This document shows positions 3,211 to 63,237 of a DNA stretch of 64,000 nucleotides, one piece after another. Each line of letters begins with the position of its first letter. The stretch's first letter is position 1. The notes beneath the pieces are model-generated. The model was not told where the DNA came from. It saw nothing but the letters and a program-made list of their open reading frames with translations, and made no database searches. The DNA is taken from IMG/VR virus record IMGVR_UViG_3300042308_001511, positions 248,001 through 312,000 of that record. One strand, given 5' to 3'. The position numbers and the translations under genes were made by a program.

Positions 3211-4587
3211 TTATTTACCGAAGTCTTTCCACCTAATTATTTTCGACTCGTTCTTTTTCACTTTCGCACTTATTTTAGCATGAAGTGGATTCGATGCAGA
3301 TGGTTTGGCTAAACTGTAAAGTTTGCTCAACTTCTTTAACAACTTATTTGTGGTATTACGAAAGAACTTCTCTTTGTCTTTGAAATAATTCACCGGATTT
3401 TGAACGTCTCTACGTGCAACTTTGATGAATGAATCTAAATACTCTTGTTTTTCTTCATCTGTCGCATCATCTTCTGGATCAATAAGAGACATTCCAAAAA
3501 GTGAAGGAGTTCTAAGTTTATCAATCAAATCACCGATACTCGATGTATTTATGTTATGTACTACCAATTGAATAAGTTTATCAATAATTTCGTCATCTGA
3601 GTATTCATCTGGTTCTTCCGTTTTTTCTTGTGATTCATCTGGATCTTCCAGTTCTTCTTGTGATTCATCTGGATCTTCCAGTTCTTCTTGTGATTCATCT
3701 GGATCTTCTGTAATTTTCGGTGATGGTTTAATAACTTTCTTTATTTCATCCATATCCGCCTTTAATTCTTCAACAAAACCATCGAATGTCCACTCATTTA
3801 TTTGTTTGAGCATTTTATATGTTTCGTTACTAGTCAGATACTCTTCAAACTTCTCTTGTTCTGCACCTTGTGCATCCATTGCACTGGCAACTTCTGCATT
3901 TCTAACCATAGATTCACATCTTGTTGTGTAGTAGAGATAGAATAAGAAATCATCAATTGGTTTTATACCGAACCTGATATTATTGTACGCAGCATACTTT
4001 GCAGAAGATTTGTGTTCTTCACCACCTTTCACGTGTCCAAGATCATATGCGTGCATAATTTCGTGTCCAATTGATGATACCATACGTGCTTTGTTGTACT
4101 CGAACGTCTCGATAACCATTCTTTCCCAATACTCGTTCTCATTCACACTCTCCTTAGGTTCAGAGAATATAAGTTTTATTTGTAAATCAATCAATCCATC
4201 GTCCTCATAGATTGTTTTAAAGTTCTTTCGGTCTATTTGTGCCTTTGGTCCGTATCCTGCACCAGCCATCCTATCACCAGGACTTTTCTCTTGTCGGTCT
4301 TCTGGGAAATCAACAACGTCAAATTTAATCAGAACGTTAAACTCTTTAATCTCATAATCATTTATAGACTTTACGTCACCAAGATCTTTTGCACGAATAT
4401 ATGTTGTAAGATAGATGTGTCTGGTTGGATATTTATATTCATCCGGATCCGCACGTTCTTCGTCGATACTATAATATCCATCATTCAACTTTTTGATAAG
4501 CAAATCATAAAGTTTACCCGAAATTTCAACTAAGCCCTTAGGTACACCAACCGCCTCGAAACTTTTGAAACCCTCAATATTCCTCAT
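3211..4587 (-). CDS. N-tag protein with zincin HExxH motif and acidic repeat
   Basis: MRNIEGFKSFEA start; SIGHEIMHAY plus downstream E (RCESMVRNAE); late motif at 4607-4617. Confidence 0.65.
   Translation of the reverse strand: MRNIEGFKSFEAVGVPKGLVEISGKLYDLLIKKLNDGYYSIDEERADPDEYKYPTRHIYLTTYIRAKDLGDVKSINDYEIKEFNVLIKFDVVDFPEDRQEKSPGDRMAGAGYGPKAQIDRKNFKTIYEDDGLIDLQIKLIFSEPKESVNENEYWERMVIETFEYNKARMVSSIGHEIMHAYDLGHVKGGEEHKSSAKYAAYNNIRFGIKPIDDFLFYLYYTTRCESMVRNAEVASAMDAQGAEQEKFEEYLTSNETYKMLKQINEWTFDGFVEELKADMDEIKKVIKPSPKITEDPDESQEELEDPDESQEELEDPDESQEKTEEPDEYSDDEIIDKLIQLVVHNINTSSIGDLIDKLRTPSLFGMSLIDPEDDATDEEKQEYLDSFIKVARRDVQNPVNYFKDKEKFFRNTTNKLLKKLSKLYSLAKPSASNPLHAKISAKVKKNESKIIRWKDFGK
3601..3710. 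repeat. 30-bp coding tandem repeat (EDPDESQEEL), about 3.5 copies
   Basis: tgattcatctggatcttccagttcttcttg at 3631 and 3661, partial at 3691, degenerate at 3601. Confidence 0.95.
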
Positions 4588-4631
4588 ATAAAAAAATAAG
4601 TTTAGGGTATATATAAAACTCCATAGATGGT

Positions 4632-5276
4632 TTACCTAATACTGACCTGAATCTCATTACCATCTATGAACTGGCACCAAGCAAACCTACCATCCTGAGA
4701 TACATTTACATCAAATCCCCACGTCTTCAAAGATTGAACGGATCTTTCGTGTTTCACATGTGTTACATCATCCAGTAATAACACTTTATTGCGTCTTATA
4801 TTCAATGGCCACGACATAAACTCAATAAATTCTAAATAACCAACACCACCTGCACTATCTAAAAATACTAATTGTTTAGTCTCATTTTTGGCGAACAGAC
4901 TAAGTGCATCCTCAACTAAAACCGGATATAAAACTTCTTGAATATAAGATACTTTAGGTCTCGTAGAATCATAGATACCACCATCTGGGAAAGTCATAGA
5001 CATAATACCCTTTATTAAGTTTTCCCTTTTTAGTGAAAGACCATGAACGAAGCAAACATTATCTAAACCTTCCAAGTTTTGTACAGCATGTGTTATATGA
5101 TTAGGATTACATTCAATTGTAAAAACATTTAGACCTTCACCTGCGAAAACCTTTGTAGAACCGGTGCCCAAAAACGTACCAGTCTCTACAACTTCATTTA
5201 TATTATATTCCTTAACTAAACGTTTTACTGTGTCTCTAAACTCGTTCGAGTTCAACTCTATACCATAGTTTGCCAT
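4632..5276 (-). CDS. Class I SAM-dependent methyltransferase
   Basis: VVETGTFLGTGST motif I; VFLDS; LLLDD. Confidence 0.7.
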   Translation of the reverse strand: MANYGIELNSNEFRDTVKRLVKEYNINEVVETGTFLGTGSTKVFAGEGLNVFTIECNPNHITHAVQNLEGLDNVCFVHGLSLKRENLIKGIMSMTFPDGGIYDSTRPKVSYIQEVLYPVLVEDALSLFAKNETKQLVFLDSAGGVGYLEFIEFMSWPLNIRRNKVLLLDDVTHVKHERSVQSLKTWGFDVNVSQDGRFAWCQFIDGNEIQVSIR

Positions 5277-5277
5277 A

Positions 5278-5673
5278 TTATTCTATTCCTAATTTTTCAA
5301 GTCTGACGTCACGCCAATCTTGTGTATTCTTTTGATCCACCACCATATCCACTGATTCACTATAATAACCATTCGATTCTCCAAACCATCTAATAGTAAC
5401 CCAACCTTTTATAGTTGCAAAACGATAAAAGGTCCAGGTTGCACTTTCATATTTACCAGTAACATCAACATTTGAACTTTCTTCACAGACAATAAGTGGT
5501 GAACCTTCGAGATCCGATAAGTCACCACAAATATCATCTATCGTAACAGACTCACAACAATCCTGACTATGCATAAATGTGTATATCCTACCATCTTCGC
5601 AATACATAACAATACTTTCGTCAATACACCTGACCGCGAACATCGTTAATCCAACTAAATCATTTACCATCAT
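5278..5673 (-). CDS. Conserved phage protein (DUF7448-like), C-tag
   Basis: QDCCESV..DICGDL..TWTFY..IRWFGESNGYYSE; ends WRDVRLEKLGIE. Confidence 0.65.
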   Translation of the reverse strand: MMVNDLVGLTMFAVRCIDESIVMYCEDGRIYTFMHSQDCCESVTIDDICGDLSDLEGSPLIVCEESSNVDVTGKYESATWTFYRFATIKGWVTIRWFGESNGYYSESVDMVVDQKNTQDWRDVRLEKLGIE

Positions 5674-5694
5674 TTTTTTGTTTATGCTACGTTG

Positions 5695-8217: not shown

Positions 8218-8745
8218 TCAATCTTCGTATTTTATGAAATGCGCCATAATCGAGTACATCGAACGGTGTATGGTTAGAAGGTACGTGCAATCCATATCGA
8301 GTTCTGAACATACCTTACCACACGCGTCCTCTATCTTTTCGATAATCTCACGTTCGTTGTCAAATATCTCCTGATCGTTTACGTTCGCTTCCCTCCTGTG
8401 GCTGACGTTGGTTATGTAGAAAACCTTCGTAGGTGTCAGATCTCCGTTCTCTATGTTTCCTATAAAGGAAATCTGTTGGGTATTTTCACCCATCGTTAGA
8501 TTTCTTTCGCTGAAGTCGTGTGATACACGAAGTCTCTTGTTCATAGTTATCTCAATATTCTCGTACGGATCCTGATCATCATCACCGTTTCCGTATGGAA
8601 AGTACTCGTGGTTTATATTGAAATCTGACCATTCGTCTTCATCCGTTATGTCCGCGAAACAGTATTTGATTGCCTGAAGTCTTCCGTCTTCCTCAATCTC
8701 TTGTAAGTCCTCTTTTATAAACTCTTTCCAGTTTCTTATCTTCAT
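8218..8745 (-). CDS. N-tag hypothetical protein
   Basis: MKIRNWKEFIKE start; co-transcribed with 8754..10031. Confidence 0.6.
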   Translation of the reverse strand: MKIRNWKEFIKEDLQEIEEDGRLQAIKYCFADITDEDEWSDFNINHEYFPYGNGDDDQDPYENIEITMNKRLRVSHDFSERNLTMGENTQQISFIGNIENGDLTPTKVFYITNVSHRREANVNDQEIFDNEREIIEKIEDACGKVCSELDMDCTYLLTIHRSMYSIMAHFIKYED

Positions 8746-8753
8746 AACGTATC

Positions 8754-10031
8754 TTATTTTCCTGTTCCTTCGCAGTATTCACAACTTTCAGAGTCGTAGT
8801 TTGTGTTGCAGGTGGAACACTCGACTTGACCGTCACCGTTACAATATTCACATTCCATTGTTCCACGACCACCGCACTCCTCACAATCAACTTCCTCGGT
8901 CTCACCTTCGCTATCCTCTATCTCAATCGATCCGTCACCGTCACAGGTTCCACATTGCCAGCTTCCTGTTCCTTCACAGTCTCCGCACTCCTGCATACCT
9001 TTGTTACAATCCGGACAGAGCTTGTGACCTCCTTCACAGTGTACACAATCACAACTTCCGTCCATTTCTTCGAGTTCCATATCGTATTCGGTACCGAAGT
9101 ATCCGTCGTTGTTACTTATTATCATATCGTTCTTGAAGAAATACTTAAGAGTGTCCATATATGGCCATTGTGAGTAGTGGTCACTACCCATCTCAACAGT
9201 GAAATATTTTGCACTCTCATCTTCTTTACCTTTGTAAATTGCGGTGAAATGCTCGTCATTGTTTTGAGACTCTTTGTAATGGTAACCATTGTCGTTGGCC
9301 CAGTTTTTGAAAACATTAACAAGTGACTCCTCGTTTGTGTAGATCCTATCCATCAACTTACCTTGTTTCTCGTACTTCATCTGGTACCCTTTATTCGAGT
9401 ATATTGCGATGTCAGTCCAGAGTATGGCTCTACCGACGATTAGATTCTGGTCTTCTGGAGACTTAAGTATGAGCAGCTTGCAGACGTCCGGATTGTTGGC
9501 GTATAAGTCAAAGTAATCAGATTTGTGTGCGTGTCTCATACACGACTTACCTAAGTCACCCTCTTGATTATAATAATTATTTACATTGTAGAACTTCCTG
9601 ATGTCTTCACCATCGACGACCTCCAAATACTTCTCCATATCATTAGCAAGTTGCTGCTCTCCTTTGTATCTGGTGACAAATTTGTAGACGTCCTCCTCGT
9701 TAACCTCAACGAATGGATCATCGAGGTTATATTCTTTGACCCATTGTCTTACAGCATTTATAATTGAGTTAACTACTTTACCGATGTTAGCGAGTTGTTT
9801 TTTATCACTCTCTGGGTGGTTAGTGAAACTGGCTTTACCGACCTCTCTTGACAAACCGATGTAGGTCTGTCTGAGTTTCTCGAAATCTCCACCACCTAAC
9901 TTTATAAGTGCTGCTGCGACCTTATCTTGGTGTTTGTTACTTATTATTTGTAGGGTGTCGAAAAAGTCTTCCTCGAAAATAAGGTACATCTCGTTCAACA
10001 TGAATAGTTCGTACGTCTTTAGTTTTCTCAT
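8754..10031 (-). CDS. N-tag protein with SC/GRA/DRxY domain and C-terminal DnaJ-like Zn fingers
   Basis: MRKLKTYELF start; repeated CxxCxGxG (CGDCEGTG, CGTCDGDG, CEECGGRG, CEYCEGTG); late motif 10036-10046. Confidence 0.7.
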   Translation of the reverse strand: MRKLKTYELFMLNEMYLIFEEDFFDTLQIISNKHQDKVAAALIKLGGGDFEKLRQTYIGLSREVGKASFTNHPESDKKQLANIGKVVNSIINAVRQWVKEYNLDDPFVEVNEEDVYKFVTRYKGEQQLANDMEKYLEVVDGEDIRKFYNVNNYYNQEGDLGKSCMRHAHKSDYFDLYANNPDVCKLLILKSPEDQNLIVGRAILWTDIAIYSNKGYQMKYEKQGKLMDRIYTNEESLVNVFKNWANDNGYHYKESQNNDEHFTAIYKGKEDESAKYFTVEMGSDHYSQWPYMDTLKYFFKNDMIISNNDGYFGTEYDMELEEMDGSCDCVHCEGGHKLCPDCNKGMQECGDCEGTGSWQCGTCDGDGSIEIEDSEGETEEVDCEECGGRGTMECEYCNGDGQVECSTCNTNYDSESCEYCEGTGK

Positions 10032-10061
10032 AAGGTTATATATAAAAAACTAAATTCCGAT

Positions 10062-11445: not shown

Positions 11446-11491
11446 AGTATTCTTTTTTGCTAATATAATGTATTTTTTTTATATATAGTAT

Positions 11492-12136
11492 ATGATGTAT
11501 TTAAAAACTTTCGAAGGTTTCGCAGAAGGAAATAGGGGCTATGTGATGCAGGTTATTACGTCCATGTGTGAGAACGACGAGATTGACTTCTCACTCGAGA
11601 CGACCAGTGTGAAGGACGGGAAGGAGACCGATTCGGTGTTTATTTTTCGTCTCGATAAAGGACCGCAGATTGAATCCGTACACGAGGCGATTGCTAGGCT
11701 CGACGACATCGGTTACTTCGCACAGAAGGTGAATTGGATACACGCCTTTCACTGTGTCATTGTTTACAGGAAGGACTGCTTGCTGGTCGATTATATGGAC
11801 GAGTTCTACGAGCGGGCTTTGAGCAGAAGAAAACTTTCTGGTGGTTATTTGGATTGTCTGGTCGGATCCCATCCTGAGAAGTCCCAGGAGATATACGCGG
11901 ATATGATTAAGAATTACGAGCACGTCGTTCTTGGAAACGAGACGTATTTCATCAGTGAGAAGGCGGAACAGTTGACGCTGAACCACGGTTCTGTGGAATG
12001 GAAGGACGGCAAATTCGGGTGGCTGCCTAAGACGAAGACCAGACATTTCGCGACTATGTACAAAACGAACAGTGCTTGGTGGTCTTGGTATTCTACATTG
12101 GATGTAGATGACTGCATCTTTATTCCCTGGACTTAG
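11492..12136 (+). CDS. N-tag hypothetical protein
   Basis: MYLKTFEGF start; TTTATATATAG at 11478-11488. Confidence 0.65.
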   Translation: MMYLKTFEGFAEGNRGYVMQVITSMCENDEIDFSLETTSVKDGKETDSVFIFRLDKGPQIESVHEAIARLDDIGYFAQKVNWIHAFHCVIVYRKDCLLVDYMDEFYERALSRRKLSGGYLDCLVGSHPEKSQEIYADMIKNYEHVVLGNETYFISEKAEQLTLNHGSVEWKDGKFGWLPKTKTRHFATMYKTNSAWWSWYSTLDVDDCIFIPWT

Positions 12137-12151: not shown

Positions 12152-12739
12152 ATGAAATGGATTAAAACATATGAAGCTTTTGGTAACGAACTCGAGACAG
12201 CTATACAAGTTGTTATAACGATGCTCGGTGAGGTCGAACGGCTGTACAAGGTGCCACGGAGCGAGTGGGGCGACGAAAAGATTGACGTGCCTGAGGAACT
12301 TATAGTGCTAGAGCTTCTGGACTATGACCGGTACACGAAGGATTGGGACGACTTCGAGGCGATGATGGCGGAGCAGTGCCCGGGCGTTCTCTTCCGTGAG
12401 AACATGAGGAACCGAAGGATTGTGCTCGGACTGGGCTCATTCGACGAGTACTGCATAAAGAAGCTGAACGAGATGTTCCCTTATAGCTGGGCCGATGAAA
12501 TGAGTACGCCGAACATATACACTTACAGGACGCCTTCGATGCGCTTCGACCAGGGCCTCGCGTTCCGTGAGCCTGTGCTGAACAAGGTCAAGGTGGCGAG
12601 CTATGTCTGGACTTTCCTGGACGCGGTGATGTGTATGGGTAATAGGAGTCGTGACGCGCAGAGGCTGGTTGGTCGTTGGCTTAACGAGATGCTCGGCTGG
12701 GATCTGGACGTGAATAGGACGACCTACGATAGTTGGTAA
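12152..12739 (+). CDS. N-tag hypothetical protein
   Basis: MKWIKTYEAF start. Confidence 0.65.
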   Translation: MKWIKTYEAFGNELETAIQVVITMLGEVERLYKVPRSEWGDEKIDVPEELIVLELLDYDRYTKDWDDFEAMMAEQCPGVLFRENMRNRRIVLGLGSFDEYCIKKLNEMFPYSWADEMSTPNIYTYRTPSMRFDQGLAFREPVLNKVKVASYVWTFLDAVMCMGNRSRDAQRLVGRWLNEMLGWDLDVNRTTYDSW

Positions 12740-12755: not shown

Positions 12756-13988
12756 TCAGTTTAAAATCTTGGTAGCATAACCGTTATTATATTCCTTTTT
12801 GGTAATAACGTCAACTATTGTAATATCAGTCTTTTGTGATTTAGACCATTTTACAAACTCAGGAAGGTGATCTCTTCGATCATCATAGAAAACAACCTCA
12901 GTTGGGTTGAATTCTTTTATCTTATCTTCTAATGTTTTGATTTTATATTCTAAGGTTACTGAGTCGATTGGTTTAAAGATATATTCATCAAACTCTAAGT
13001 TTTGACTTTCTAATACTTTTCGAACTTCATTTTCTAAAGTTACGACACGACCAGTCATCATTATAAGATAATCACCATTTTCCTTACTATGATTGTATTT
13101 GTCAATGGTCCAATCATTTGTTTTAATATCAAACAAAGATAAATCTAATGATAGTGGTGATTTCCACCAATCAACACCCCTTTTAAAAGGCTCACCAAAT
13201 TTCAACATCCATTCACTTTTAATTGGTGTATGAAATAAAGTATCGTCAAAATCAAAAAATACTAATCTTTGAGTGGTTAAACTTTCTTTTATAACATAAG
13301 TGTCATTTTTTCTAACTGCCAATTTTCCATCCATAAATTTGTAAAACTTATATTTCTTATCAATTGAGGTTACAATATAATAAGAATCTGGGTTTAATCC
13401 TTTATATCTCTTAATATTTCCGTCTATTTTAATACCATCAACTTCACCACCTTGTTGTTTAGCATAAGCCCACTTAATATAGTTAGGATCGACATGTCTA
13501 TCTCTTAGTTTATCTTGATCCAATGAAGTCTGAAGTGTTGATAAAAGATGTATAAAAACAATTTCATAGTTAAACTCTTTTGCTTTATCAAATATTTCTT
13601 TAACGTGTCTAAACCCTTTATCTGTAAATTCTTTACCTGCACCAGTTGTATCATAGATAAAGTTTTGACCAGTTTTAATAAAAGATTCTAATTTACTAAT
13701 ATTTAATTCAGATGCATTTTTAGTTCTACCACCTTCCGGAGTTTCTTTACCTTTGTAATAAACATTTGGATCTCCAGTATAAAGAAGTGATACGTCATCA
13801 GTTGAGAAATCTTTTATACTTTGATTCTTAGTATGTATATGATTCTTAATAAAATAAGATTTACCAATACCAGGTGCTCCAATAAGAAAAACTGCTAAAC
13901 CTTTTTCCTTATTAATTATTTCTTTGATAGGTTCATTTTTAGACCATTCTTCTAAAATAAATTGTTGATAGATATTTATATACTTCAT
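12756..13988 (-). CDS. N-tag P-loop kinase (zeta-toxin/AAA_33-like) fused to HAD phosphatase; Pnkp-like architecture
   Basis: Start reassigned to MKYINIYQQFILE behind TAATATATAC (13992-14001); GAPGIGKS, FIYDTTG; FFDFDDTLF, MMTGR, FYDDR. Confidence 0.75.
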   Translation of the reverse strand: MKYINIYQQFILEEWSKNEPIKEIINKEKGLAVFLIGAPGIGKSYFIKNHIHTKNQSIKDFSTDDVSLLYTGDPNVYYKGKETPEGGRTKNASELNISKLESFIKTGQNFIYDTTGAGKEFTDKGFRHVKEIFDKAKEFNYEIVFIHLLSTLQTSLDQDKLRDRHVDPNYIKWAYAKQQGGEVDGIKIDGNIKRYKGLNPDSYYIVTSIDKKYKFYKFMDGKLAVRKNDTYVIKESLTTQRLVFFDFDDTLFHTPIKSEWMLKFGEPFKRGVDWWKSPLSLDLSLFDIKTNDWTIDKYNHSKENGDYLIMMTGRVVTLENEVRKVLESQNLEFDEYIFKPIDSVTLEYKIKTLEDKIKEFNPTEVVFYDDRRDHLPEFVKWSKSQKTDITIVDVITKKEYNNGYATKILN

Positions 13989-14019
13989 AAAGTATATATT
14001 ATGAATGCAACTTATATTT

Positions 14020-42637: not shown

Positions 42638-42638
42638 A

Positions 42639-42932: not shown

Positions 42933-42933
42933 C

Positions 42934-44679: not shown

Positions 44680-44703
44680 TTTTTGATTAATATATATAAA
44701 CGT

Positions 44704-49372: not shown

Positions 49373-49433
49373 AGGTGTGTTTTTATTTATAGAGTATATA
49401 TTTCACGTAGAAAATACGTTCTCTTTAGTAGCG

Positions 49434-49677: not shown

Positions 49678-50031
49678 TTATTCGAGAACCAGGTCAATCT
49701 TCAACTCTCTAATCTCTTCGTCTGTTAGAGCTCCTATTTGTGCCACTCGGTCTAATATAATCTTTTCTAAATCAGTGGCCAAGCGTACTTCACGGTCGTA
49801 CACAGAGACTCTTTTTCCACTCAAATAAGGATAGGTGTTTTGACCGTCTTTTCTGAGGAACTCATTACTGGACTTCCGCCACATATGGTTCATATTACTG
49901 AAGGTCAATCCAAATACTAACGCGTTGGCAAAATCATCGTTCTGTGTGGTGTAAGGTCGTATAAGGCACCAGCTACCATCGTGTTCGTCGGTGATGAGGT
50001 ATGTCTCGTCTTTTATGAATGTTCTTTTCAT
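49678..50031 (-). CDS. C-tag hypothetical protein (paralog of 56217..56553)
   Basis: ends IRELKIDLVLE. Confidence 0.65.
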   Translation of the reverse strand: MKRTFIKDETYLITDEHDGSWCLIRPYTTQNDDFANALVFGLTFSNMNHMWRKSSNEFLRKDGQNTYPYLSGKRVSVYDREVRLATDLEKIILDRVAQIGALTDEEIRELKIDLVLE

Positions 50032-50324
50032 ACACCCAGTTCTTTAAGTCTTTCTTCTCTTATATGTTGTAAGTATTCCGCGAGAGGATAAATTACGCCC
50101 CAACTGTTAGACCACGATGTATTGGCTTCGTTGCTGTAGTCTCTATCCCATTCTCTAGGAAATCGAACTTCGAATCTCGGTCCGACGCCGTGTGGTCCTT
50201 CAGATATCTTTTTAACAATTCCTTCGACACCGATGAATCGTTCCTTAGATTCGGTCCAATCTAGGTTTGCCGAGTTTAGTTCGTGGAATCTGAATCCTTT
50301 TACTTTACTGCCTTTCTCTATCAC
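50028..50324 (-). CDS. C-tag KGFxF-family protein
   Basis: GTG start after tandem promoters at 50333-50349; KVKGFRF..GVEG..IYP; ends IREERLKELGV. Confidence 0.65.
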   Translation of the reverse strand: MIEKGSKVKGFRFHELNSANLDWTESKERFIGVEGIVKKISEGPHGVGPRFEVRFPREWDRDYSNEANTSWSNSWGVIYPLAEYLQHIREERLKELGV

Positions 50325-50353
50325 TTTTTTTACAAATATAACAAATATAAGAA

Positions 50354-50548
50354 TCATTCTGTAACCTTTATTATGTCGTTCGAAAAATAATCGCTAACTT
50401 TTTCTTCCTCTCCATATGGTCTGAAGTAAAGAAGACCGTCTCTTTTGTAGATCCTGTGTTGACCCGCTTGTTGTACATCTACCAGGTCTCCATCCGCGAG
50501 TTCGTTGTCGAACTTGTCTATACATTTTATTTTCATGTTGTCTCTCAT
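50354..50548 (-). CDS. Hypothetical protein
   Basis: 64-aa ORF. Confidence 0.5.
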   Translation of the reverse strand: MRDNMKIKCIDKFDNELADGDLVDVQQAGQHRIYKRDGLLYFRPYGEEEKVSDYFSNDIIKVTE

Positions 50549-50644
50549 GTCGTTTTTTTAGTAAAGATAAGGTGGTGGTTTGGTGTCCACAACGGACAAT
50601 TGTCCTCATTTGTTTTAGGGTAAATAATAATAATATATACTCGT

Positions 50645-51310
50645 ATGAAAATTAGAATGTTTGAGAATTGGTCACAAGACTTCGTGACAGATTTCACCGA
50701 CAACGGTTTCGATGTTGATGTGAATGAATATACTATCAACGGACAGTATAAGGGTAAGTTCGTGGTTACACAGGTTTCCAGGTGGTTCGACGATATGTTG
50801 GGTAAGATAGATACCGAGTACAATATAATGAGGACTAAGACATTCTTTAATTCGATTACAGGGAATGCCAACTTCGAGGTTGTTGTTGCACCTCCTACGA
50901 GTGGAAACTCGATTGAGTTTATGTTGGATGGTGTCAAGCATGAGTTCTATATAAAATATGTCAGGTGTTTCGGTAGCGGATCTGAAATAGGCCTTGCGTT
51001 TGTGGGTAACCGTGGTGATGGAGATTCTGGAACGATTTATATCAGTGTAGTTGAGAGTCCTGTGAGGAAGACGAAGAAGATCCGTTTTGGTTACAACAAC
51101 AGGACCAAAAACGTTCTTGTGTCGATGGATGTAGTGGGTAAGCTACTGGAACTAATCATCTCAGATAAATTAGAGGTAGGTGATTATGGTGAGAGAAAGA
51201 AGTATAGTGAGTTAACTAATGAAGAGCTAATTATTCGTAAATTTGATGGTGGGATGACCAAGCAGAAGTTCGATTTACATATAGATGCAATAAAGAGTGT
51301 AGTGAGATGA
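50645..51310 (+). CDS. N-tag hypothetical protein
   Basis: MKIRMFENWS; TAATATATAC at 50631-50640. Confidence 0.65.
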   Translation: MKIRMFENWSQDFVTDFTDNGFDVDVNEYTINGQYKGKFVVTQVSRWFDDMLGKIDTEYNIMRTKTFFNSITGNANFEVVVAPPTSGNSIEFMLDGVKHEFYIKYVRCFGSGSEIGLAFVGNRGDGDSGTIYISVVESPVRKTKKIRFGYNNRTKNVLVSMDVVGKLLELIISDKLEVGDYGERKKYSELTNEELIIRKFDGGMTKQKFDLHIDAIKSVVR

Positions 51311-51939
51311 GGTACATAAAACTATATGAAGAGTTCTCCAAGAACGAGTTCGACCAGGTGATGATGTCAATCTGTGAGGATATGTCCTTCGAGGTCTACG
51401 AAGATTTCCCTTCTACTGAGGATGTAAGGGTCTACTTGGTGGACGGTTTACCTAACATAGATCGTTCTAGGTATGAAGAGTATTTGGGTGATGATTGGCA
51501 TATTATTTCGAAAGAGTACAGGTATCTCGATAAGTGTATGGTTAGTTTCGTGAAGGGTGAGCCTAGTGATGCAGCTCTTAAGTGGTTGGAGGATGTGTAT
51601 GGTGACCTGAGACGAGAAGAGGAGCATCTTCCTTCGACTGAATGGGGAGCTTATGGTGAGAAGGCGGGTATTTCCTACAACTACATTGATGGTACTGGTA
51701 GGAAGATACTATCATTCGTTGTGCGTGATGTTTTAAATCAATCGATGGATCCGTTCGATATGGAATCTTCGGGTGGTACGAAAGTATATTTCAACACTGA
51801 TGTGCGTGACTTCCTACGAGCTTGTTTCGGTCTGTCGGATTTATTTGCACATATTCTAAGAGATATAGTAAATATTTGGATTAAGGATGTGTATGGTATA
51901 AACGGTCATGTCTATCTTCTTCCTCCTAATAACAGGTAG
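51307..51939 (+). CDS. N-tag protein, paralog of 44704..45138
   Basis: MRYIKLYEEFS..DQVMMSICEDMSF. Confidence 0.7.
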   Translation: MRYIKLYEEFSKNEFDQVMMSICEDMSFEVYEDFPSTEDVRVYLVDGLPNIDRSRYEEYLGDDWHIISKEYRYLDKCMVSFVKGEPSDAALKWLEDVYGDLRREEEHLPSTEWGAYGEKAGISYNYIDGTGRKILSFVVRDVLNQSMDPFDMESSGGTKVYFNTDVRDFLRACFGLSDLFAHILRDIVNIWIKDVYGINGHVYLLPPNNR

Positions 51940-52945: not shown

Positions 52946-53221
52946 TTACCTCATCTCTATTTCCTCTAATGATACAACGTTCACCTCTGCCAGTGTGTGG
53001 TATTTTGCCCACTGCTCTATGTAGATGCCACGCATCGGATCATCATCATCGTTTAGTTTCTCGTCAATCTCGCGGTAGTATTCTTTCACTTTCACTAAGA
53101 GTTTGTTTGCCTTTTCTACGTAGGCAAGTGCGAGTTCTTTGTCATTGGTTACGAACAGGTTACCTCTGTGGAAGTCGTCCCAACTTCCGCTTGTGTATGT
53201 TATTATGTACATATTTTTCAT
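52946..53221 (-). CDS. Hypothetical phage protein
   Basis: Coupled start MKNMYIITY; GSWDD. Confidence 0.55.
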   Translation of the reverse strand: MKNMYIITYTSGSWDDFHRGNLFVTNDKELALAYVEKANKLLVKVKEYYREIDEKLNDDDDPMRGIYIEQWAKYHTLAEVNVVSLEEIEMR

Positions 53222-53469
53222 TGTATTTCTAATTTGTTCAATTGTCTTTCTCTCCACTCTTTTTGTGTGTAAAATCTTTCTTCAATATCACCGCCGACCC
53301 AATGTGGAATACCATCTCCGTTTGTATTTTTTATGATGCTACCTGGCCCGTCTACGAAAGTAATTTCATACATATCACCTGGTATGAAATGGTATTCATA
53401 AGACCCTCCGGTTTTACCATATAGTGCGGTATAGGGTTTATTAACATAGATTATATCTCCTACTTTCAT
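53218..53469 (-). CDS. C-tag SH3-like protein
   Basis: ends WRERQLNKLEIQ. Confidence 0.65.
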   Translation of the reverse strand: MKVGDIIYVNKPYTALYGKTGGSYEYHFIPGDMYEITFVDGPGSIIKNTNGDGIPHWVGGDIEERFYTQKEWRERQLNKLEIQ

Positions 53470-53807
53470 ATTCCTAGTTCTATTAGTCTCTGTTCTCGTA
53501 TCTCACGGAGATACTCTTTTATAGGATAGCACCATTTCCTTGGCGGCACTTCCTCTAAACGATAATCTCCTTCATTCGAACTTGATAATACTAATCTTTC
53601 AATTTCCTCATCAGGAAGGATTTCGAATTGTATGGTTATGTAGTTTTCATTCGGTGTTCTGGATTCGTATACTATTTCTACTATTGATCCCTCGCGACCG
53701 ATGTATTTCTCCATACGTTGATCCCAGTACATATTCGAAGAGTTTTTCTTATTTGTGAACCTGAACCCTTTTGCTTTTTGTCCTAACTCTAGTGTACCTA
53801 CTTTCAT
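53466..53807 (-). CDS. C-tag KGFxF-family protein
   Basis: GQKAKGFRF..GREG..WCYP; ends IREQRLIELGI. Confidence 0.7.
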   Translation of the reverse strand: MKVGTLELGQKAKGFRFTNKKNSSNMYWDQRMEKYIGREGSIVEIVYESRTPNENYITIQFEILPDEEIERLVLSSSNEGDYRLEEVPPRKWCYPIKEYLREIREQRLIELGI

Positions 53808-54473: not shown

Positions 54474-55724
54474 TTATTGTTTCTTCTTTGTCTTCTTTTT
54501 AGTTGGTATTGGCGGTAAAGATTTGAACTCTGTCAGTGTAGGCTCGAGTCCTTTCATTATCGGCCTCAGGTACGACACGTGTTCCTTTTCGTACTGTTCT
54601 ATTATCCAACTTTCTTTAAACTCTTTCTCTATCTTTGTGACCAGGTCGCCGAACTCTCGGTCCAACTCTGTGAAGACTTTGACAATCTCCGGGTTCCCCA
54701 TCGTTTCTTTGTATATTTCTGGGTAATTCTGTTTGGCGTAGAGTAGGTACCATCCCGTGAATGTCCTGAACTCGTACCAAGCGAAGTAGGTCGATAGGCA
54801 GCCTTCCTCGAATATTTTCAACGACACCTTGTCACCTTTCACCTTTGCTGTCTGGTATCCTATCCAGTTAGACCGGGTTCCGTTATAGTATGCAGAGAAC
54901 TCGTCCATCATTCCGTATATGCCCCACGAGTTGGCACTTACTTTCGAGTTGGCACTTACGTAGGTGCCGTACCTGAATATCTTTGATGGTGCGTCCTTTG
55001 GAACTATGGCTATGAACTCGCATGAATTGTAAGGTTTAGTGTGTCTCGCCCATAGGTCGTGGCCGGGTGTTATCATATAGCGGTGTCGAAGATCTTTGTC
55101 CCATCCCCAGTCTATCTTGTTGTAGTGATGTGTCGTCTCGTGTAGTAGCGTGTTGAGTTTATGTGGAAAACTTACACTGGTGTCACCACCGTATGGTATA
55201 GTCTTTCCATTTACCACAGAGTTGTAACATCCGGGACCGCAGTACGCACTATCTACTACTATCATATACTCTGGACACCACTTTTTGATACTGGCGATGG
55301 CTTTGTTCTTTATATACTCTTGACTTTGCTTGATGTAGAGCTCGTTGTTCTTTCTTATCCATTCTAGTCTTTCCCATTCCTTTATGGTTGGAAACAAATT
55401 GGCTTCGTATTTCTTTATTCGTTTTGGATTGAATATTCCTTCGTAGAGATCGTTTTTCTTGTCGTCGTATCGCATGAACTTGGGAACCTTACCTTTCATA
55501 ACTATTCCGAAACGTTTTATTATGTATGTGCCGGAGTCGATCTTCTCGATCGGTATTCTGACATCCTTTGGTTTGTATGGTTTTTGATAAGAGTGTGTAA
55601 CAAAGGTTCCGTCGCTGTAGAACCTTATGGCTTTTATTGGTTTGTTTCCGGTTAGGTATACTTTGGAAGTGTCTGGTTGTGCCAGTGATATAAGTGGTAA
55701 CAGAAGTAGTATAATGAGTTTCAT
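54474..55724 (-). CDS. Secreted zincin-like metallopeptidase
   Basis: Signal peptide MKLIILLLLPLISLA; LLHETTH; MDEFSAY. Confidence 0.6.
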   Translation of the reverse strand: MKLIILLLLPLISLAQPDTSKVYLTGNKPIKAIRFYSDGTFVTHSYQKPYKPKDVRIPIEKIDSGTYIIKRFGIVMKGKVPKFMRYDDKKNDLYEGIFNPKRIKKYEANLFPTIKEWERLEWIRKNNELYIKQSQEYIKNKAIASIKKWCPEYMIVVDSAYCGPGCYNSVVNGKTIPYGGDTSVSFPHKLNTLLHETTHHYNKIDWGWDKDLRHRYMITPGHDLWARHTKPYNSCEFIAIVPKDAPSKIFRYGTYVSANSKVSANSWGIYGMMDEFSAYYNGTRSNWIGYQTAKVKGDKVSLKIFEEGCLSTYFAWYEFRTFTGWYLLYAKQNYPEIYKETMGNPEIVKVFTELDREFGDLVTKIEKEFKESWIIEQYEKEHVSYLRPIMKGLEPTLTEFKSLPPIPTKKKTKKKQ

Positions 55725-55746: not shown

Positions 55747-56220
55747 TTAGTATTTACAGTGTATGTTTAGATAGATACCTTTCATTTGTGCATTGATATA
55801 TACAAATCGAATAAAGTAGGTTGTATTCTTTTTTATGTAGGTATATTCTTCAAATGAAGTAACCTCGCTTAAGAAGTTGGATTCATTTATATCTACTTTG
55901 ACTTTTGTTCTATCTTTTGGTAAATCTTTGGCAAATTTATTTAAAACATTAGTAATAGAATCTGATGAGACATTACTTTTTAGATCAACACCATCATAAT
56001 CATTAAGATAATAAAGCCCGGTGAATCCTTTTGTTTTGACCATATCGACTATTATGTCGATTTTTTTTGAATAAAGAATGTCCAAAAGGCGGTTTTTATA
56101 TTTGTTATGATTGGCAAATACTTTTGTAGGTTGCCATGTATCTGAAGCGTCTATATCTGTACTATCTGATTGTGAGTACAAATTCAATGCTATCAATAAG
56201 AATAAAGTTAAAATTTTCAT
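55747..56220 (-). CDS. Secreted hypothetical protein
   Basis: Signal peptide MKILTLFLLIALNLYSQ. Confidence 0.6.
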   Translation of the reverse strand: MKILTLFLLIALNLYSQSDSTDIDASDTWQPTKVFANHNKYKNRLLDILYSKKIDIIVDMVKTKGFTGLYYLNDYDGVDLKSNVSSDSITNVLNKFAKDLPKDRTKVKVDINESNFLSEVTSFEEYTYIKKNTTYFIRFVYINAQMKGIYLNIHCKY

Positions 56221-58062: not shown

Positions 58063-58302
58063 TTAGATTCCGAGTGAATCGATCCTCTGTTCTCTGTATT
58101 CTGCCATATCCATAAAGTCTGACCTGCGGCGGACCCTGTATTGACCGTCTTCACAGGTGACGATGACAAGTTTTGGTCCTAGCTCACCAGTTGGTGTGTA
58201 CGTTGAAGGGCAGTCTGATGTCTCGTAAGCCTTTCTAGCTTTCATTAACCATACTCCGTTACCATCCTTCCAATCGTGTTTGGATATCATTATATCGTTC
58301 AT
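58063..58302 (-). CDS. C-tag protein (paralog of 14629..14853)
   Basis: ends YREQRIDSLGI. Confidence 0.7.
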   Translation of the reverse strand: MNDIMISKHDWKDGNGVWLMKARKAYETSDCPSTYTPTGELGPKLVIVTCEDGQYRVRRRSDFMDMAEYREQRIDSLGI

Positions 58303-58514
58303 ATTCCTAGTTTTTCCAGTACGAGTTGTCTTTTTTCCACAGTTGATATGAATAGTTCTCTATCGTATATTGCATAGTCGGTTTCGCCGTTTCCCCAGTA
58401 TATTGCGTAGTAGTTTACTCTATCCACCGCATCGTACCATTCGCCAATCTTTATGTCGGTGTGATAGCCGGATCTGTTTGATACACACTGAACTTTTATC
58501 CTCTGTCGTTTCAT
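58299..58514 (-). CDS. C-tag SH3-like protein
   Basis: VQCVSN..IGEWYDA; ends KRQLVLEKLGI. Confidence 0.65.
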   Translation of the reverse strand: MKRQRIKVQCVSNRSGYHTDIKIGEWYDAVDRVNYYAIYWGNGETDYAIYDRELFISTVEKRQLVLEKLGI

Positions 58515-58777
58515 ATTCCGAGTTCTTTTATCTTTTGGTCTCTTAGTCGTATTTTGTATTCGTCGAGATTTATGGTGATGTCTTTTTTATAGGTGAAATG
58601 TTTCTTCATACCTTGTACGTTCTTTATGATAGTAAAGTAATAGTTCACCATTAGTAAGTCTTCGGTAAAGTCTAATTGTATTTCGTAGATTTTATCGATG
58701 ACTATTTTATCTCTTTCTATCGTAGGCTCTTTTTCGGTTATAAAGTCCTTTATCAGTTCGTTGTCGTATTCGATCAT
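58511..58777 (-). CDS. C-tag hypothetical protein
   Basis: ends LRDQKIKELGI. Confidence 0.65.
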   Translation of the reverse strand: MIEYDNELIKDFITEKEPTIERDKIVIDKIYEIQLDFTEDLLMVNYYFTIIKNVQGMKKHFTYKKDITINLDEYKIRLRDQKIKELGI

Positions 58778-59028
58778 TCTATTCCTAGTTCATCGAGTTT
58801 TCTGTCTCTTTGTCTCTGTGCCTCGCTGAGGTTGATTAGTCGGCCTCTTGTGTGTGAATTTGGGCTGTGGAAGTTTTTGTTGTGACTCGACGTCCACGGT
58901 ATGTCGAGCTCGCTGGACCAAATCCATATTCTATCGTACGTGAAGTTCTTGTCGTCGAGTTCCTCTATCGTGAACGTCTTTTCTGGCTGTGTTTCCCAGT
59001 ACACGAGGTCTCCTACCTGGTAGTTCAT
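58774..59028 (-). CDS. C-tag SH3-like protein
   Basis: YQVGDLVYW; ends QRDRKLDELGIE; TATATTCG at 59088-59095. Confidence 0.65.
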   Translation of the reverse strand: MNYQVGDLVYWETQPEKTFTIEELDDKNFTYDRIWIWSSELDIPWTSSHNKNFHSPNSHTRGRLINLSEAQRQRDRKLDELGIE

Positions 59029-59168
59029 ATCCCTATTACTTTTACGTGCGACTTTATATCCATTGGTGTTCCTGCTGTTTTATTTTCCGAATATAAGTAA
59101 ATAATATGTAACTGACAAATTATAGTTATTTTATTTTTAATATATAAGATATAAAAAAAATATTTATA

Positions 59169-60341
59169 ATGGCAACATTTACCACATCAAAAACTTCTGG
59201 AAGTATATATGTATCTGTTAATACAACAACGGGTTATTGGATGAGTTTCCATAATGGAAGTTATAATGGAAATTCAAACACCCCACAGATATATAGTGAT
59301 TCTGGTACCTTCAATTATTGGGGTAAAAGATTGGATGTAATTGCAACAAATGGTGAATTTACAATTGTCGCGTGTGATGTTAATGGAAACATTGGTGGTG
59401 ATATAACTTTGTTGAATTTATATTCTAGTTCTGATATAATTGCGTTTGACGGAACTGGTTTGACCGCTTTGACTAAATTGAGTATAGAGGGTGCATCGAA
59501 TATTAGAGGTCAGCTAACATCTTTTGATGCGACTGGTATGACTTCATTGAATTGGTTATACTTAAGGAGTAATTTACTAACAAATATAAACGTAACTGGT
59601 TTAGTAAATCTAACTAAGTTAGTGTTGGATGGTAATCAATTAACTTGGGGAGGTATAAGTGGTTTAAATACTTTGAGTAGTTTAACTTGGTTAAACTTAA
59701 ATGGTAACTTATTAACTACATTTGATGGTTCAGGTTTGAGCTCGTTATTACAACTTGATTTGTTCTACAATCAGGTAACAACATCTGGAATAACTAATTT
59801 ACCAAATACATTGGTTAAATTGAATTTACGTTATAATAGACTTACATCATTTGATGCTACTAGTTTAGTAAACTTAACTGAACTTAGTTTACAGATGAAT
59901 CAAATAACATCTGTAAATTTATCTGGCCTAACAAAATTGATTTTACTTAATTTATCTGATAATTTATTGACAGATATAAATGTTTCTGGATTGACTAGTT
60001 TGAAATATATAAATCTTACTGGTAATCGTTTATCTACAATGGATGTAAGTGGTCTAACTAATTTAGTTGATTTGAGATTATGGCGTAATTCGTCTATAAC
60101 ACCTAGTGTTAACAATCAGATATTACAACAATTGGATCAAAATGGTGCTATTGGTGATACTTCTACTAGTAAGGGTTACTTTCCAGCAAATGGTGTTTTT
60201 TGGTCTAATAATGGTAGAACTTCTGTTAGTAATGTAAGTTTCAATAATTTGACGAATAAAAATTGGGAATTTGATGGTTTGGATTTGATTGCGAGTCCAA
60301 CTCGTCAGTTATCGGGCACTAAGGACAGAAAAAACTTATAA
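59169..60341 (+). CDS. Leucine-rich repeat (internalin-like) protein
   Basis: About 10 repeats of LTxLxLxxNxLTxxDxSG; TAATATATAA at 59138-59147. Confidence 0.85.
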   Translation: MATFTTSKTSGSIYVSVNTTTGYWMSFHNGSYNGNSNTPQIYSDSGTFNYWGKRLDVIATNGEFTIVACDVNGNIGGDITLLNLYSSSDIIAFDGTGLTALTKLSIEGASNIRGQLTSFDATGMTSLNWLYLRSNLLTNINVTGLVNLTKLVLDGNQLTWGGISGLNTLSSLTWLNLNGNLLTTFDGSGLSSLLQLDLFYNQVTTSGITNLPNTLVKLNLRYNRLTSFDATSLVNLTELSLQMNQITSVNLSGLTKLILLNLSDNLLTDINVSGLTSLKYINLTGNRLSTMDVSGLTNLVDLRLWRNSSITPSVNNQILQQLDQNGAIGDTSTSKGYFPANGVFWSNNGRTSVSNVSFNNLTNKNWEFDGLDLIASPTRQLSGTKDRKNL

Positions 60342-61600: not shown

Positions 61601-61709
61601 ATTTTTTTATTTAGTATTCAAATATAACTATTTATTTTGAATTGTAAAAAGAAATATGGAAAGACTGTCGGGTTTGTGTGTTTATATATATCCTAAACTA
61701 ATAAAACAT

Positions 61710-62285
61710 ATGTTATCCAGAGAAAAGATGATTAGTATGATTAGGAGGTCACAAACCTACATATCTGTATTACTATTCACTTTTGTTTTCATATTCTGTT
61801 GGAAGACTACGAATCTCGATATAACAAAGATAGAGTTATCGAAATGGGGTCAATCTGGATTTGTTTCTATTATATGGAATAGTGCGGTATTAATTTTCTC
61901 ATTATCAATTGCGGTAAATTCATGGTTGTATATGAGGGGACATAAACGACTTAAGCATCGTAGGAAGTTTTATATTCTTTTCGCGTTTCTTCCGATGGCA
62001 TTGGCTGTGGTTGGTTTATTTGATGCGTTTTCACATCCTTATATTCACTCGGTTGCAGCAGGTCTTTATTTCTTCGTATATCCACTTACCATTTTTCTTT
62101 TTGCACATTTCAATAGAAAGAATATGCAATATTTACAATGGACTACACATATAACTTTAGCGGTATTGATGGCAATTGCACCAATATCATTTATGCTTTT
62201 GTTTAAAGGAAAGGCAATAGCAGAAACGGTACACACATTGCTCGTAATCATATACAATGTAATGATTGCTAGACACGAGCATTAA
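61710..62285 (+). CDS. Multi-pass membrane protein (DUF998/Frag1-like)
   Basis: 5-6 TM segments, IHSVAAGLYF; late-like motif at 61681-61691. Confidence 0.6.
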   Translation: MLSREKMISMIRRSQTYISVLLFTFVFIFCWKTTNLDITKIELSKWGQSGFVSIIWNSAVLIFSLSIAVNSWLYMRGHKRLKHRRKFYILFAFLPMALAVVGLFDAFSHPYIHSVAAGLYFFVYPLTIFLFAHFNRKNMQYLQWTTHITLAVLMAIAPISFMLLFKGKAIAETVHTLLVIIYNVMIARHEH

Positions 62286-62303
62286 TAAAAATAAAATAAT
62301 AAA

Positions 62304-62969
62304 ATGAAAAATCAAAAATGGAAATACAATCAGAAGGCAGAAGACGCGTGGCAAGTTTTGAGAATACAAAGTGAGTTTATAAAGGGATTCGATGAATTAT
62401 CTGAGTTAACTCCATGTATATCGGTCTTCGGATCTGCTAGGACTGATAAAGACGACAAATATTATAAAGAAGCAACTAGATTGTCTGAGATGATTGTAAA
62501 AAGTGGATATGGTGTAATAACTGGTGGTGGACCAGGAATAATGGAGGCTGCAAATATGGGTGCGTATGGTAATGATGGTAAATCTGTGGGTTTGGAAATT
62601 GAATTACCATTTGAGACAAGTGCTAATAAGTATATTGATAAATTGGTTTCGTGTAGGTATTTCTTTACACGAAAAGTATTCTTTTTGAAGTATTCACAAG
62701 CATTTGTTGGTTTTCCGGGTGGTTTTGGAACATTAGATGAATTGTTCGAAACATTGACACTTATGCAGACTGGACATCTAAGGATGTTGCCAATTGTTTT
62801 AGTTGGTAAAGACTATTGGAAAGGGATGATTAAATGGATTAAGAAAACTATGTTAGAGGATGGTAAAGTTTCTAAAGAAGATTTAAACCTTTTCAAAGTT
62901 GTTGATACTGCAGAAGAAGCGATGGAGTATATTTTATCGAAATTGGAAGAGAACAAACCTAACTTTTAG
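62304..62969 (+). CDS. LOG-family (TIGR00730) nucleotide phosphoribohydrolase
   Basis: FGSAR, ITGGGPGIMEAANMGA, IELPFE, FFTRK, PGGFGTLDELFE. Confidence 0.93.
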   Translation: MKNQKWKYNQKAEDAWQVLRIQSEFIKGFDELSELTPCISVFGSARTDKDDKYYKEATRLSEMIVKSGYGVITGGGPGIMEAANMGAYGNDGKSVGLEIELPFETSANKYIDKLVSCRYFFTRKVFFLKYSQAFVGFPGGFGTLDELFETLTLMQTGHLRMLPIVLVGKDYWKGMIKWIKKTMLEDGKVSKEDLNLFKVVDTAEEAMEYILSKLEENKPNF

Positions 62970-63027
62970 TAACTGGTTTTGGTGTATAGTTTATAATATA
63001 TAGTTTATAAAAAAAAATAAATCTACG

Positions 63028-63237
63028 ATGATAAAATTGAAGAAGTTTGAGGAGTTGGATTACGAACAGCTTAGAGACCAAACGAATAGAGACTTCCACG
63101 GAAGTAAATCAGATACTGTTGAATATCCGGATGTTAGGAATATGAATAGGGATGAGTTGAAGGACTATCTTGAAACTATTGGTGTTCCATCAAACATACT
63201 CGATGAAACTGTGGATAATATACTTAGTGCACTATAA
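63028..63237 (+). CDS. N-tag small protein
   Basis: MIKLKKFEEL; TAATATATAG at 62994-63003. Confidence 0.6.
   Translation: MIKLKKFEELDYEQLRDQTNRDFHGSKSDTVEYPDVRNMNRDELKDYLETIGVPSNILDETVDNILSAL

Follow-up and report, generated by a model that had tools for sequence, protein, structure and literature searches.

Twenty ORFs of an uncultured freshwater phage share an N-terminal tag resembling the T4 capsid-targeting sequence and stand behind a predicted late promoter

We analyzed a 64,000-nucleotide (nt) stretch of viral DNA (the window), which covers positions 248,001-312,000 of contig JGI 3300042308 Ga0453162_0000001 (344,083 bp; IMG/VR record IMGVR_UViG_3300042308_001511). Between positions 3211 and 63237 of the window, 20 open reading frames (ORFs) begin with variants of one peptide, M-[KR]-x-[IL]-[KR]-x-[YF]-E-x-F, in every case at the initiator Met; an example of the tag in its 13-residue form is the MKYIKTFESFLNE type. 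The tagged genes are associated with a common AT-rich motif, and a matrix made from the tags retrieves the internal proteins of phage T4 that carry a capsid-targeting sequence (CTS). We consider it probable that the tag is a T4-type capsid-targeting propeptide, borne by late-expressed cargo and removed by a gp21-type protease. The tagged set is unusual for its scale, and it suggests that this phage lineage would pack dozens of proteins, several of them enzymes, into its capsid.

The tag and the motif ahead of the tagged genes

The original prediction, made from the letters of the window, had counted 20 tagged ORFs and quoted five of their N-termini. All five starts are where it placed them, and the count proved exact after three start corrections: a P-loop gene begins at ATG 39461 rather than TTG 39254, a kinase-phosphatase gene begins at ATG 13988 rather than GTG 14123, and a gene for a protein of 584 amino acids (aa) probably begins at its second Met, at 22267. 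A DNA pattern for M[KR]x[IL]Kx[YF]E matched seven times in the window, with 0.00 matches expected from 100 shuffles. The part of the contig that was read extends over positions 214,354-344,083 (130 kb), and from there onward into a related ENA scaffold; the contig counts below refer to 98 kb of it unless another length is given. The N-termini of 22 out of 170 ORFs fit the tag expression, against about one predicted by N-terminal composition; among internal Met peptides, 6 of 609 (1%) fit it. Since the expression was derived from the window's own tags, the controls carry the weight here, and not the count. The expression does not cover two operon genes (19875 and 20519), which were included on inspection and bring the number of tagged genes to 24; over the whole 130 kb, approximately 27 of 226 ORFs are tagged, two looser matches included. 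Synonymous codons vary freely in the tags (AAA/AAG, TAC/TAT, GAA/GAG, ACA/ACG/ACT), which argues for selection on the peptide and not on the DNA or RNA.

A AATATATA-type motif lies 4-25 nt ahead of 14 of the 20 tagged ORFs, and each of the remaining six comes immediately after a gene of this kind within one operon, in agreement with the original claim that every tagged ORF is either motif-led or in a motif-led operon. Within the window, AATATATA followed by ATGA at a distance of 3-26 nt occurs 12 times (0.99 expected). On the contig the motif precedes 30 of the 170 genes, and 17 of these 30 are tagged compared with 7 of the 140 others (Fisher p = 2e-10); all seven tagged genes that are not motif-led come right after a motif-led gene of the same orientation. 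Thirteen motif-led genes are untagged, and the genes led by the motif include those of untagged 1,722-aa and 548-aa proteins. A host-type promoter element, TAnnTTTG, was found upstream of 25 genes, all of them untagged, and upstream of 0 of the 24 tagged genes.

The motif has the form (T/A)AATATATA and is AT-rich and of -10 type, with no -35 box. Tagged genes of both the contig and IMG/VR show two ranges of spacing between motif and ATG, 4-6 nt and 17-25 nt. The short spacing is seen in 10 of the 17 motif-led tagged genes of the contig and in 33 of 52 IMG/VR tagged genes with a motif; given a T4-like start a few bases past the motif, little or no leader would be left on many late mRNAs. The motif is also near-palindromic, and single copies lie between divergent late genes (4608-4615, 11480-11487, 44690-44698 and about 12.7 kb left of the window), so that one site may serve both strands.

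The likeness to T4 was quantified with a position matrix built from the 22 tag cores of the source contig only, which was run on all 1,580 T4 ATG starts with at least 40 codons to the stop. The highest scores were obtained for ipIII (19.0), ipII (19.0), gene 61.1 (17.8) and ipI (11.0), followed by a fifth start at 9.1. The T4 internal proteins IPIII, IPII and IPI therefore rank 1, 2 and 4 out of 1,580, which bears out the earlier description of the tag as T4-CTS-like. In the T4 genome, ipII and ipIII start MKTYQEFIAE-A and ipI starts MKTFKEF; the core common to the tag and the T4 CTS is K-T-[YF]-x-x-F-[ILV]-x-E. Of the 22 contig cores, 19 have an aromatic residue at the second aromatic position, which is Phe in 17. 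In the T4 CTS, residues 4 and 7 (Tyr4 and Phe7) are involved in targeting and residues 8 and 10 in processing (PMC9026906). T4 residues 4, 7, 8 and 10 align with the conserved aromatic residue, F, [ILV] and E of the new tag, respectively. The T4 gene 61.1 (NC_000866 18966-19130, minus strand) encodes a 54-aa hypothetical protein starting MKTFKEFIKED; gp61.1 may be a CTS-bearing T4 protein that has gone unrecognised.

Past the tag, the proteins have little in common. Only three related pairs were found among the 24 tagged proteins beyond residue 16, and recognised domains begin just past the tag, at residues 17-33, with Walker A motifs at residues 25, 30 and 37. The recognised cargo consists of a polynucleotide kinase-phosphatase, two further P-loop proteins, a GNAT and zinc-finger-like proteins, alongside many orphans. 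In the family of the 584-aa protein (32 homologues, 32-95% identity), the N-terminus MKWIKxRxxFLxEAK is nearly invariant, and the cleavage-like site within it, [FW][LI]xE then AK, is invariant. An AlphaFold2 model of the 584-aa protein has a mean predicted local distance difference test score (pLDDT) of 85.8, with residues 1-13 unplaced (<50); it had no match in the PDB at E = 0.001, and weak GNAT-like and LRR-like similarities were not relied on. Among tagged proteins, 11 of 24 have an [ILVM]-x-E sequence whose last residue falls at 9-16, compared with 21 of 146 untagged ones (p = 9e-4).

Lineage of the source phage and tagged genes in its relatives

Among 50,697 deposited phage genomes, cultured ones included, none matched the window at near-identity. 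DNA nearly identical to it was found in numerous lake and river metagenomes. One gene of the contig codes for a myovirus baseplate wedge protein (phrog_219, E = 6e-22) with 56-57% identity over 99-100% of the length to those of LR745206 (634,780 bp) and LR756502 (642,428 bp), two uncultured genomes of about 640 kb that we take to be records from a huge-phage survey. Both genomes also share the 584-aa protein (33% identity) and the kinase-phosphatase (up to 42%). We assign the source phage, which is from freshwater, to the relatives of LR756502 and LR745206 among the huge T4-superfamily phages. Its host is probably a member of the Bacteroidota, as indicated by a G+C content of ~38%, the TAnnTTTG elements and a type IX secretion sorting domain. 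The contig probably holds only part of a genome, about half, because a relative with an 87%-identical 584-aa protein sits on a 660,742-bp contig. The related ENA scaffold extends beyond the contig end, and its sequence there had no close counterpart in an IMG/VR scan.

A scan of IMG/VR with the DNA pattern of M[KR]x[IL]KT[YF]ExF yielded at least 140 matches in at least 120 stretches, from contigs of 4.6-640 kb, with nearly all matches at ORF starts. Among the matches listed, an in-frame stop lies no more than 55 codons upstream in 138 of 140, and mostly no more than 10. At the positions left free by the pattern, the 115 distinct tags among the matches listed have [ILV] at position 11 (57/115), N or S at 12 and E at 13 (55/115), and the combination [ILVM]-x-E at 11-13 is present in 50 of them. 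The tag is widespread in uncultured T4-superfamily phages. One stretch (L029, IMGVR_UViG_3300031566_000207) contains 13 consecutive ORFs in 15 kb, all starting MK[HYN]IKT[FY]E.F[IVT].E; this array looks like a greatly expanded version of the T4 internal-protein locus.

Head genes were found in two clades of relatives. In clade A, a tagged ORF of 112-116 aa lies exactly between the gp20 portal gene and a protease-scaffold fusion gene in at least 33 of the retrieved loci, a position that corresponds to the slot of the T4 prohead core genes 67 and 68. The fusion protein matches Pfam Peptidase_S77 (locus L009, E = 4e-12) and T4 gp21, and the gene of a Gp23-family capsid protein comes next. Clade B, the nearest to the source phage, comprises LR756502, LR745206 and contigs of up to 483 kb, and has Portal_T4, Gp23, gp4-like and gp44-like genes, as well as a head maturation protease (phrog_207, E = 2e-30) in locus L265 and in LR756502. 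Its portal gene is flanked by tagged ORFs, and tagged homologues of a four-gene operon of the window (33-36% identity) are located ~8 kb upstream of the portal. In LR756502 (642 kb), 90 of 958 ORFs (9.4%) are tagged, with a rate of 0.64% for internal Met peptides, and the tagged ORFs occur genome-wide, most densely in the first 100 kb. Two tag subtypes were noticed, ...[KR]-x-[YF]-N-E-[SN] (19875-20522 in the window) and ...[KR]-x-[YF]-K-[IL]-F-E-[SAN] (17450-19174 and 39461-40255), which are also seen genome-wide in LR756502; they may differ in the site or the occurrence of cleavage.

The relatives also bear on the motif. In clade B, (T/A)AATATATA is present upstream of the portal, protease-scaffold and Gp23-family capsid genes (L209, L265 and LR756502), and a gp55-like late sigma factor is encoded in locus L117 (phrog_234, E = 2e-8), which together support a T4-style late promoter. 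BLAST searches of the retrieved loci with T4 gp55, gp22, gp67, gp68 and PseT gave no match, gp55 being detected by the PHROG profile only. In portal-centred clade B loci, which were not chosen by tag, the motif accompanies 50 of 71 tagged and 347 of 813 untagged genes (p = 9e-6). The genome-wide co-occurrence of tag and motif proposed by the original prediction was confirmed in the complete relative LR756502, where the motif accompanies 52 of 90 tagged and 181 of 868 untagged ORFs (p = 8e-13). A null association in clade A is an artefact and not a finding, because the motif expression ([AT]ATATATA) misses the local form GATATATAAA. In one alignment, the capsid proteins of clade A, clade B and Tenacibaculum phage PTm1 have I-N-E or L-Y-E in the N-terminal leader, which would suit the same protease specificity.

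Proposed mechanism and alternative explanations

In the pathway that we propose, the tagged genes would be transcribed from the AT-rich, -10-type late promoter (T/A)AATATATA, read by a gp55-like late sigma factor. The tag, which is amphipathic, would bind the scaffolding core of the assembling prohead, and the cargo would be enclosed as the gp23-type shell forms. A gp21-type (Peptidase S77) prohead protease would then cut after the Glu of [ILVM]-x-E, at about residue 9-15, freeing the mature protein inside the head. Finally, in the least certain step, the cargo would leave with the DNA at infection and act ahead of phage gene expression. We also put forward, tentatively but as a serious possibility, a wider version, in which huge, uncultured T4-superfamily phages of one widespread lineage use a single short universal tag to load about 25-90 proteins, roughly a tenth of their coding capacity, including RNA-repair, kinase and acetyltransferase enzymes, and deliver them with the DNA as a toolkit.

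Several points weigh against capsid targeting. Packaging, cleavage and ejection of the tagged proteins are steps that we infer. The gp21-like protease, gp23 and gp55-like sigma factor, which the original prediction expected elsewhere in the genome, are all present in the nearest relatives, but portal, capsid protein, prohead protease and gp55-like genes were not found in the 130 kb of contig read, where a baseplate wedge gene, metabolic genes and an endolysin gene are located. We attribute this to the partial contig; judging from the gene order of LR745206, some 350 kb would separate the head genes from the wedge gene, which would place them off the contig. The source contig was also never among the results of IMG/VR portal-profile scans and of a search with a clade B portal protein, because these keep only the matches closest to the query. 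No cultured phage with the tag was found. The tagged 115-aa protein of clade A has no match in the 50,697 phage records, and PTm1, the nearest cultured relative by capsid protein, has a T4-type head module, and the 45 kb surrounding its head genes are free of tags. A canonical [ILVM]-x-E site is missing near about half of the tags. The putative cargo proteins are for the most part acidic, with an isoelectric point (pI) of 4.2-5.5, whereas CTS-bearing internal proteins of related phages are described as basic (PMC9026906). The 90 cargo species of LR756502 exceed the ~50 head proteins of the giant phage SPN3US (PMC5694885), and some of the tagged proteins may therefore have a different role. A single RNA run was found (metatranscriptome X20); it contributed four short contigs on 6 kb and is silent on start sites and timing.

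These points leave room for other explanations. It is unlikely, though it deserves consideration, that the tag directs proteins to the prohead core while most tagged proteins are assembly or scaffold parts that are degraded or retained, and not injected effectors. The best-placed tagged gene, that of clade A, occupies the slot of gp67 and gp68, which in T4 are core proteins fragmented by gp21 (PMC5694885); many tagged proteins are small, acidic orphans, and the four-gene tagged operon is kept near the head genes in relatives. However, the polynucleotide kinase-phosphatase, the two P-loop proteins and the GNAT are complete with intact motifs, so a role as destroyed scaffold makes little sense for them, and the tagged genes of LR756502 are spread over the genome and not clustered at its head genes.

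A signal to a destination or process other than the capsid, such as recognition by a protease or unfoldase, timed degradation or another late assembly, appears quite improbable. Homologues of ClpP, Peptidase_M50, S51 and C39 are encoded on the contig, 90 tagged proteins in one genome are very many for capsid cargo, and half of the tags have no canonical cleavage site. Yet the matrix picks exactly those T4 proteins whose N-termini are proven to target the capsid, tagged genes lie inside T4-type head modules, and tagged genes stand behind the same motif as portal and capsid genes, which fits assembly.

The tag could also be a by-product of translation start on late mRNAs, with the first codons under RNA constraint for leaderless or Shine-Dalgarno-free initiation, as the frequent 4-6 nt spacing of motif and ATG and the abundance of A-rich codons (Lys, Ile, Asn) in the tags might indicate. 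This is very hard to reconcile with residues that are fixed while their codons vary synonymously, or with conserved positions that are aromatic and Glu at helical spacing; moreover, operon-internal genes that have no motif are tagged too, and the 13 untagged motif-led contig genes are matched in relatives by untagged portal, capsid and protease genes. Equally little credence can be given to a functionless peptide that is alike through common descent or cassette recombination (a duplicated family or a recombination box), for although there are three paralogous pairs and tandem arrays such as that of L029, and a conserved promoter plus tag could act as a recombination site, most tagged proteins share nothing past residue 16 and have different folds, the tag stays nearly invariant while orthologues fall to 32% identity, and tag DNA differs at synonymous sites. 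None of these four explanations accounts for a matrix that retrieves exactly the T4 CTS proteins.

If capsid targeting is the correct reading, a 13-residue pattern together with a promoter motif would be enough to catalogue the proteins packed in the capsids of an entire phage lineage, with no need for cultivation. This bears on the role of the hundreds of orphan genes of huge phages and on the identity of the proteins that uncultured phages inject. Such a catalogue would contain candidates for counter-defence enzymes that act early, one example being a packaged polynucleotide kinase-phosphatase that might repair cleaved tRNA. Under the wider version put forward above, the injected proteome of thousands of uncultured phages could become readable from sequence, and the tag would offer a natural handle for packaging foreign proteins in Bacteroidota phages.

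Features of the window and comparison with known systems

The original prediction had listed three P-loop kinases, a HAD phosphatase and a GNAT among the tagged proteins, and three proteins with a Walker A motif, the phosphatase (as part of one of them) and the GNAT were recovered. The polynucleotide kinase-phosphatase-like protein (12756-13988, minus strand, 410 aa, MKYINIYQQFILEE start; motif 13993-13999, 4 nt before ATG 13988) has a Walker A motif at residue 37, a PHROG polynucleotide kinase match beginning at residue 33 and a C-terminal HAD domain (Pfam HAD_SAK_1). The second P-loop protein, an NTPase or kinase (36663-37544, plus strand, 293 aa, MKYIKTYEVLKEAK start; motif 36639-36645), has Walker A at residue 25 and weak AAA-type Pfam matches from residue 21. 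The third is kinase-like, with Walker A at residue 30 (39461-40255, plus strand, 264 aa, MKYIRTYGIFESKK start; motif 39450-39456, 4 nt before the ATG), and is a JGI gene call with a faint SKI Pfam match on record. The GNAT acetyltransferase (48662-49372, minus strand, 236 aa, MKILKTYEGFLNK start; motif 49395-49401) matches Pfam Acetyltransf_1 and Acetyltransf_9, its domain running from residue 17. Directly behind this gene, in the same late operon, is an untagged gene for a Peptidase_C39-like cysteine protease (47978-48661).

Zinc-finger proteins had likewise been named, and CxxC clusters are present in two tagged proteins. One (8754-10031, minus strand, 425 aa, MRKLKTYELFMLNE start; motif 10037-10043, 5 nt before the ATG) has six CxxC pairs near its C-terminus; it has a tagged paralogue outside the window (L300:9148-10818, MKRLMTRQQFLNEA start) and leads an operon whose second gene is 8218-8745 (minus strand, 175 aa, MKIRNWKEFIKED start). 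The other (17450-19174, minus strand, 574 aa, MKHVKAFNIFEAT start), with a CxxC zinc-finger-like stretch at residues 80-121, is encoded by the last gene of the four-gene tagged operon. This operon begins with the gene of the 584-aa protein (20519-22273, minus strand, probable start 22267, MKWIKGRKQFLTEAK start; motif 22278-22284), followed on the same strand by two paralogues, 19875-20522 (215 aa, starting MKHLRRFNESD) and 19171-19869 (232 aa, MKHIRRFDRVFEAL start). Tagged homologues of the 574-aa protein adjoin a 584-aa homologue in clade B loci L117 and L021. For the protein taken to be a zincin (3211-4587, minus strand, 458 aa, MRNIEGFKSFEAV start; motif 4608-4614, 20 nt before the ATG), the HExxH motif is indeed found, at residue 175, but no Pfam or PHROG family matches. 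The leucine-rich repeat (LRR) protein does not belong to the tagged set: 59169-60341 (plus strand, 390 aa; motif 59140-59146) has the repeats (Pfam LRR_4 and LRR_8) and is motif-led, but its N-terminus, MATFTTSK, is untagged.

The remaining tagged ORFs are as follows. On the plus strand, 11492-12136 (214 aa, MMYLKTFEGFAEG start; motif 11481-11487, 4 nt before the ATG) leads an operon with 12152-12739 (195 aa, MKWIKTYEAFGNE start) as its second gene, and 50645-51310 (221 aa, MKIRMFENWSQD start, a weaker tag; motif 50633-50639, 5 nt before the ATG) leads one with 51307-51939 (210 aa, MRYIKLYEEFSKNE start). A paralogue of the last is encoded at 44704-45138 (144 aa, MRYIKLYEDFSAS start; motif 44690-44698). 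Three further plus-strand ORFs are 26751-27011 (86 aa, MQILKTYEGFHGY start; motif 26725-26731, 19 nt before the ATG), 37880-38524 (214 aa, MRLLKTFEGFHLDE start; motif 37868-37874, 5 nt before the ATG) and 63028-63237 (69 aa, MIKLKKFEELDYE start; motif 62996-63002, 25 nt before the ATG). The minus-strand ORF 38836-39378 (180 aa, MRRRLMMFEEFGQD start; motif 39383-39389, 4 nt before the ATG) is matched in its tag by an ORF just right of the window (64789-65298 in window numbering, MRRIKMFEEFGFDE start). Motif-led but untagged are 27806-28453 (minus strand, 215 aa; motif 28475-28481), with a weak lectin-like Pfam match on record, and the 548-aa ORF, whose 3' part is 1-1273 (plus strand) and which begins 373 nt left of the window; the latter has no family match.

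Small overlapping ORFs of 70-125 aa form arrays at 40516-43634, 49678-50357, 53218-53807 and 58063-59028, in which the preceding ORF ends ...R-x-x-R-L-K-E-L-G-I and many members have K-G-F-[KR]-F near the start. They have the strand and promoter type of the non-late genes and look like a multi-copy family. Signal-peptide-like N-termini were noted at 25862-26359, 29248-30042, 33516-34805, 54474-55724, 55747-56220 and 63269-63700, and one signal-peptide-like protein has a type IX secretion C-terminal sorting domain (Por_Secre_tail), which suggests that such phage proteins would be exported by the infected Bacteroidota host. Two N6/N4 DNA methyltransferases (24183-25196 and 30045-30812) probably protect phage DNA. 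The window contains a metabolic gene, for methylenetetrahydrofolate reductase (1274-2224), and no tRNA genes. To the left of the window (L289, L293 and L129) are genes for DHFR, a PurH-like protein, guanylate kinase, GDP-sugar epimerases/dehydratases and several glycosyltransferases and methyltransferases, as well as ClpP, HU and a late-motif-led Hc1 histone-like protein.

Compared with LR756502 and LR745206, the contig has the same tag and the same motif; its G+C content is ~38-40%, while theirs is 31%, and it represents part of a genome only. In themselves, the CTS, gp21 and the late promoter mechanism belong to the established biology of T4, and sequences resembling the CTS have been described in its close relatives (PMC9026906). 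As in T4, the putative propeptide is N-terminal and 10-19 residues long, the core K-T-[YF]-x-x-F is followed, in about half of the tags, by [ILV]-x-E, the tagged proteins are unrelated and predicted to be late-expressed, and gp20, gp21, gp22-like and gp23 head genes are present, here in the relatives. The new tag differs in having three extra residues (M-K-x-I/L) ahead of the core, and in number: T4 has three such genes, perhaps four, whereas the 64 kb of the window contain 20 and the related genome of 642 kb contains 90. In contrast to T4, recognisable enzymes are part of the putative cargo, most of which is acidic; the host probably belongs to the Bacteroidota, and the system is known from sequence alone. 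The comparison suggests that the T4 CTS, known mainly from close relatives of T4, is common to very distant members of the superfamily. Full-text literature searches found no paper on the extended tag, on its presence in huge or Bacteroidota-type phages or on its use on dozens of proteins, which is no proof that there is none.

The T4 late promoter, TATAAATA, is read by the gp55 sigma factor. Like it, the motif described here is a single AT-rich octamer with no -35 box, found in relatives upstream of portal, protease and capsid genes and together with a gp55-like sigma factor. It reads (T/A)AATATATA rather than TATAAATA, its sites are predicted computationally, and it is peculiar in lying 4-6 or 17-25 nt from the ATG, in being near-palindromic and in being common to divergent gene pairs.

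The giant phages phiKZ and SPN3US also have a protease related to gp21, and their propeptides, which are thought to target proteins to the prohead, are cut after Glu at A/S/G-x-E (PMC5694885). Their ejection and inner-body proteins resemble the present set in that many proteins lie inside the head, here as predicted from tags. Those phages belong to another lineage, whereas in the relatives of our contig Pfam Gp23 and Portal_T4 are matched directly, by the capsid protein and the portal, respectively. Most phiKZ and SPN3US propeptides exceed 100 residues and have no universal short consensus; here one short consensus is found on nearly all candidates, and its reuse allows the putative cargo to be listed directly from the genome.

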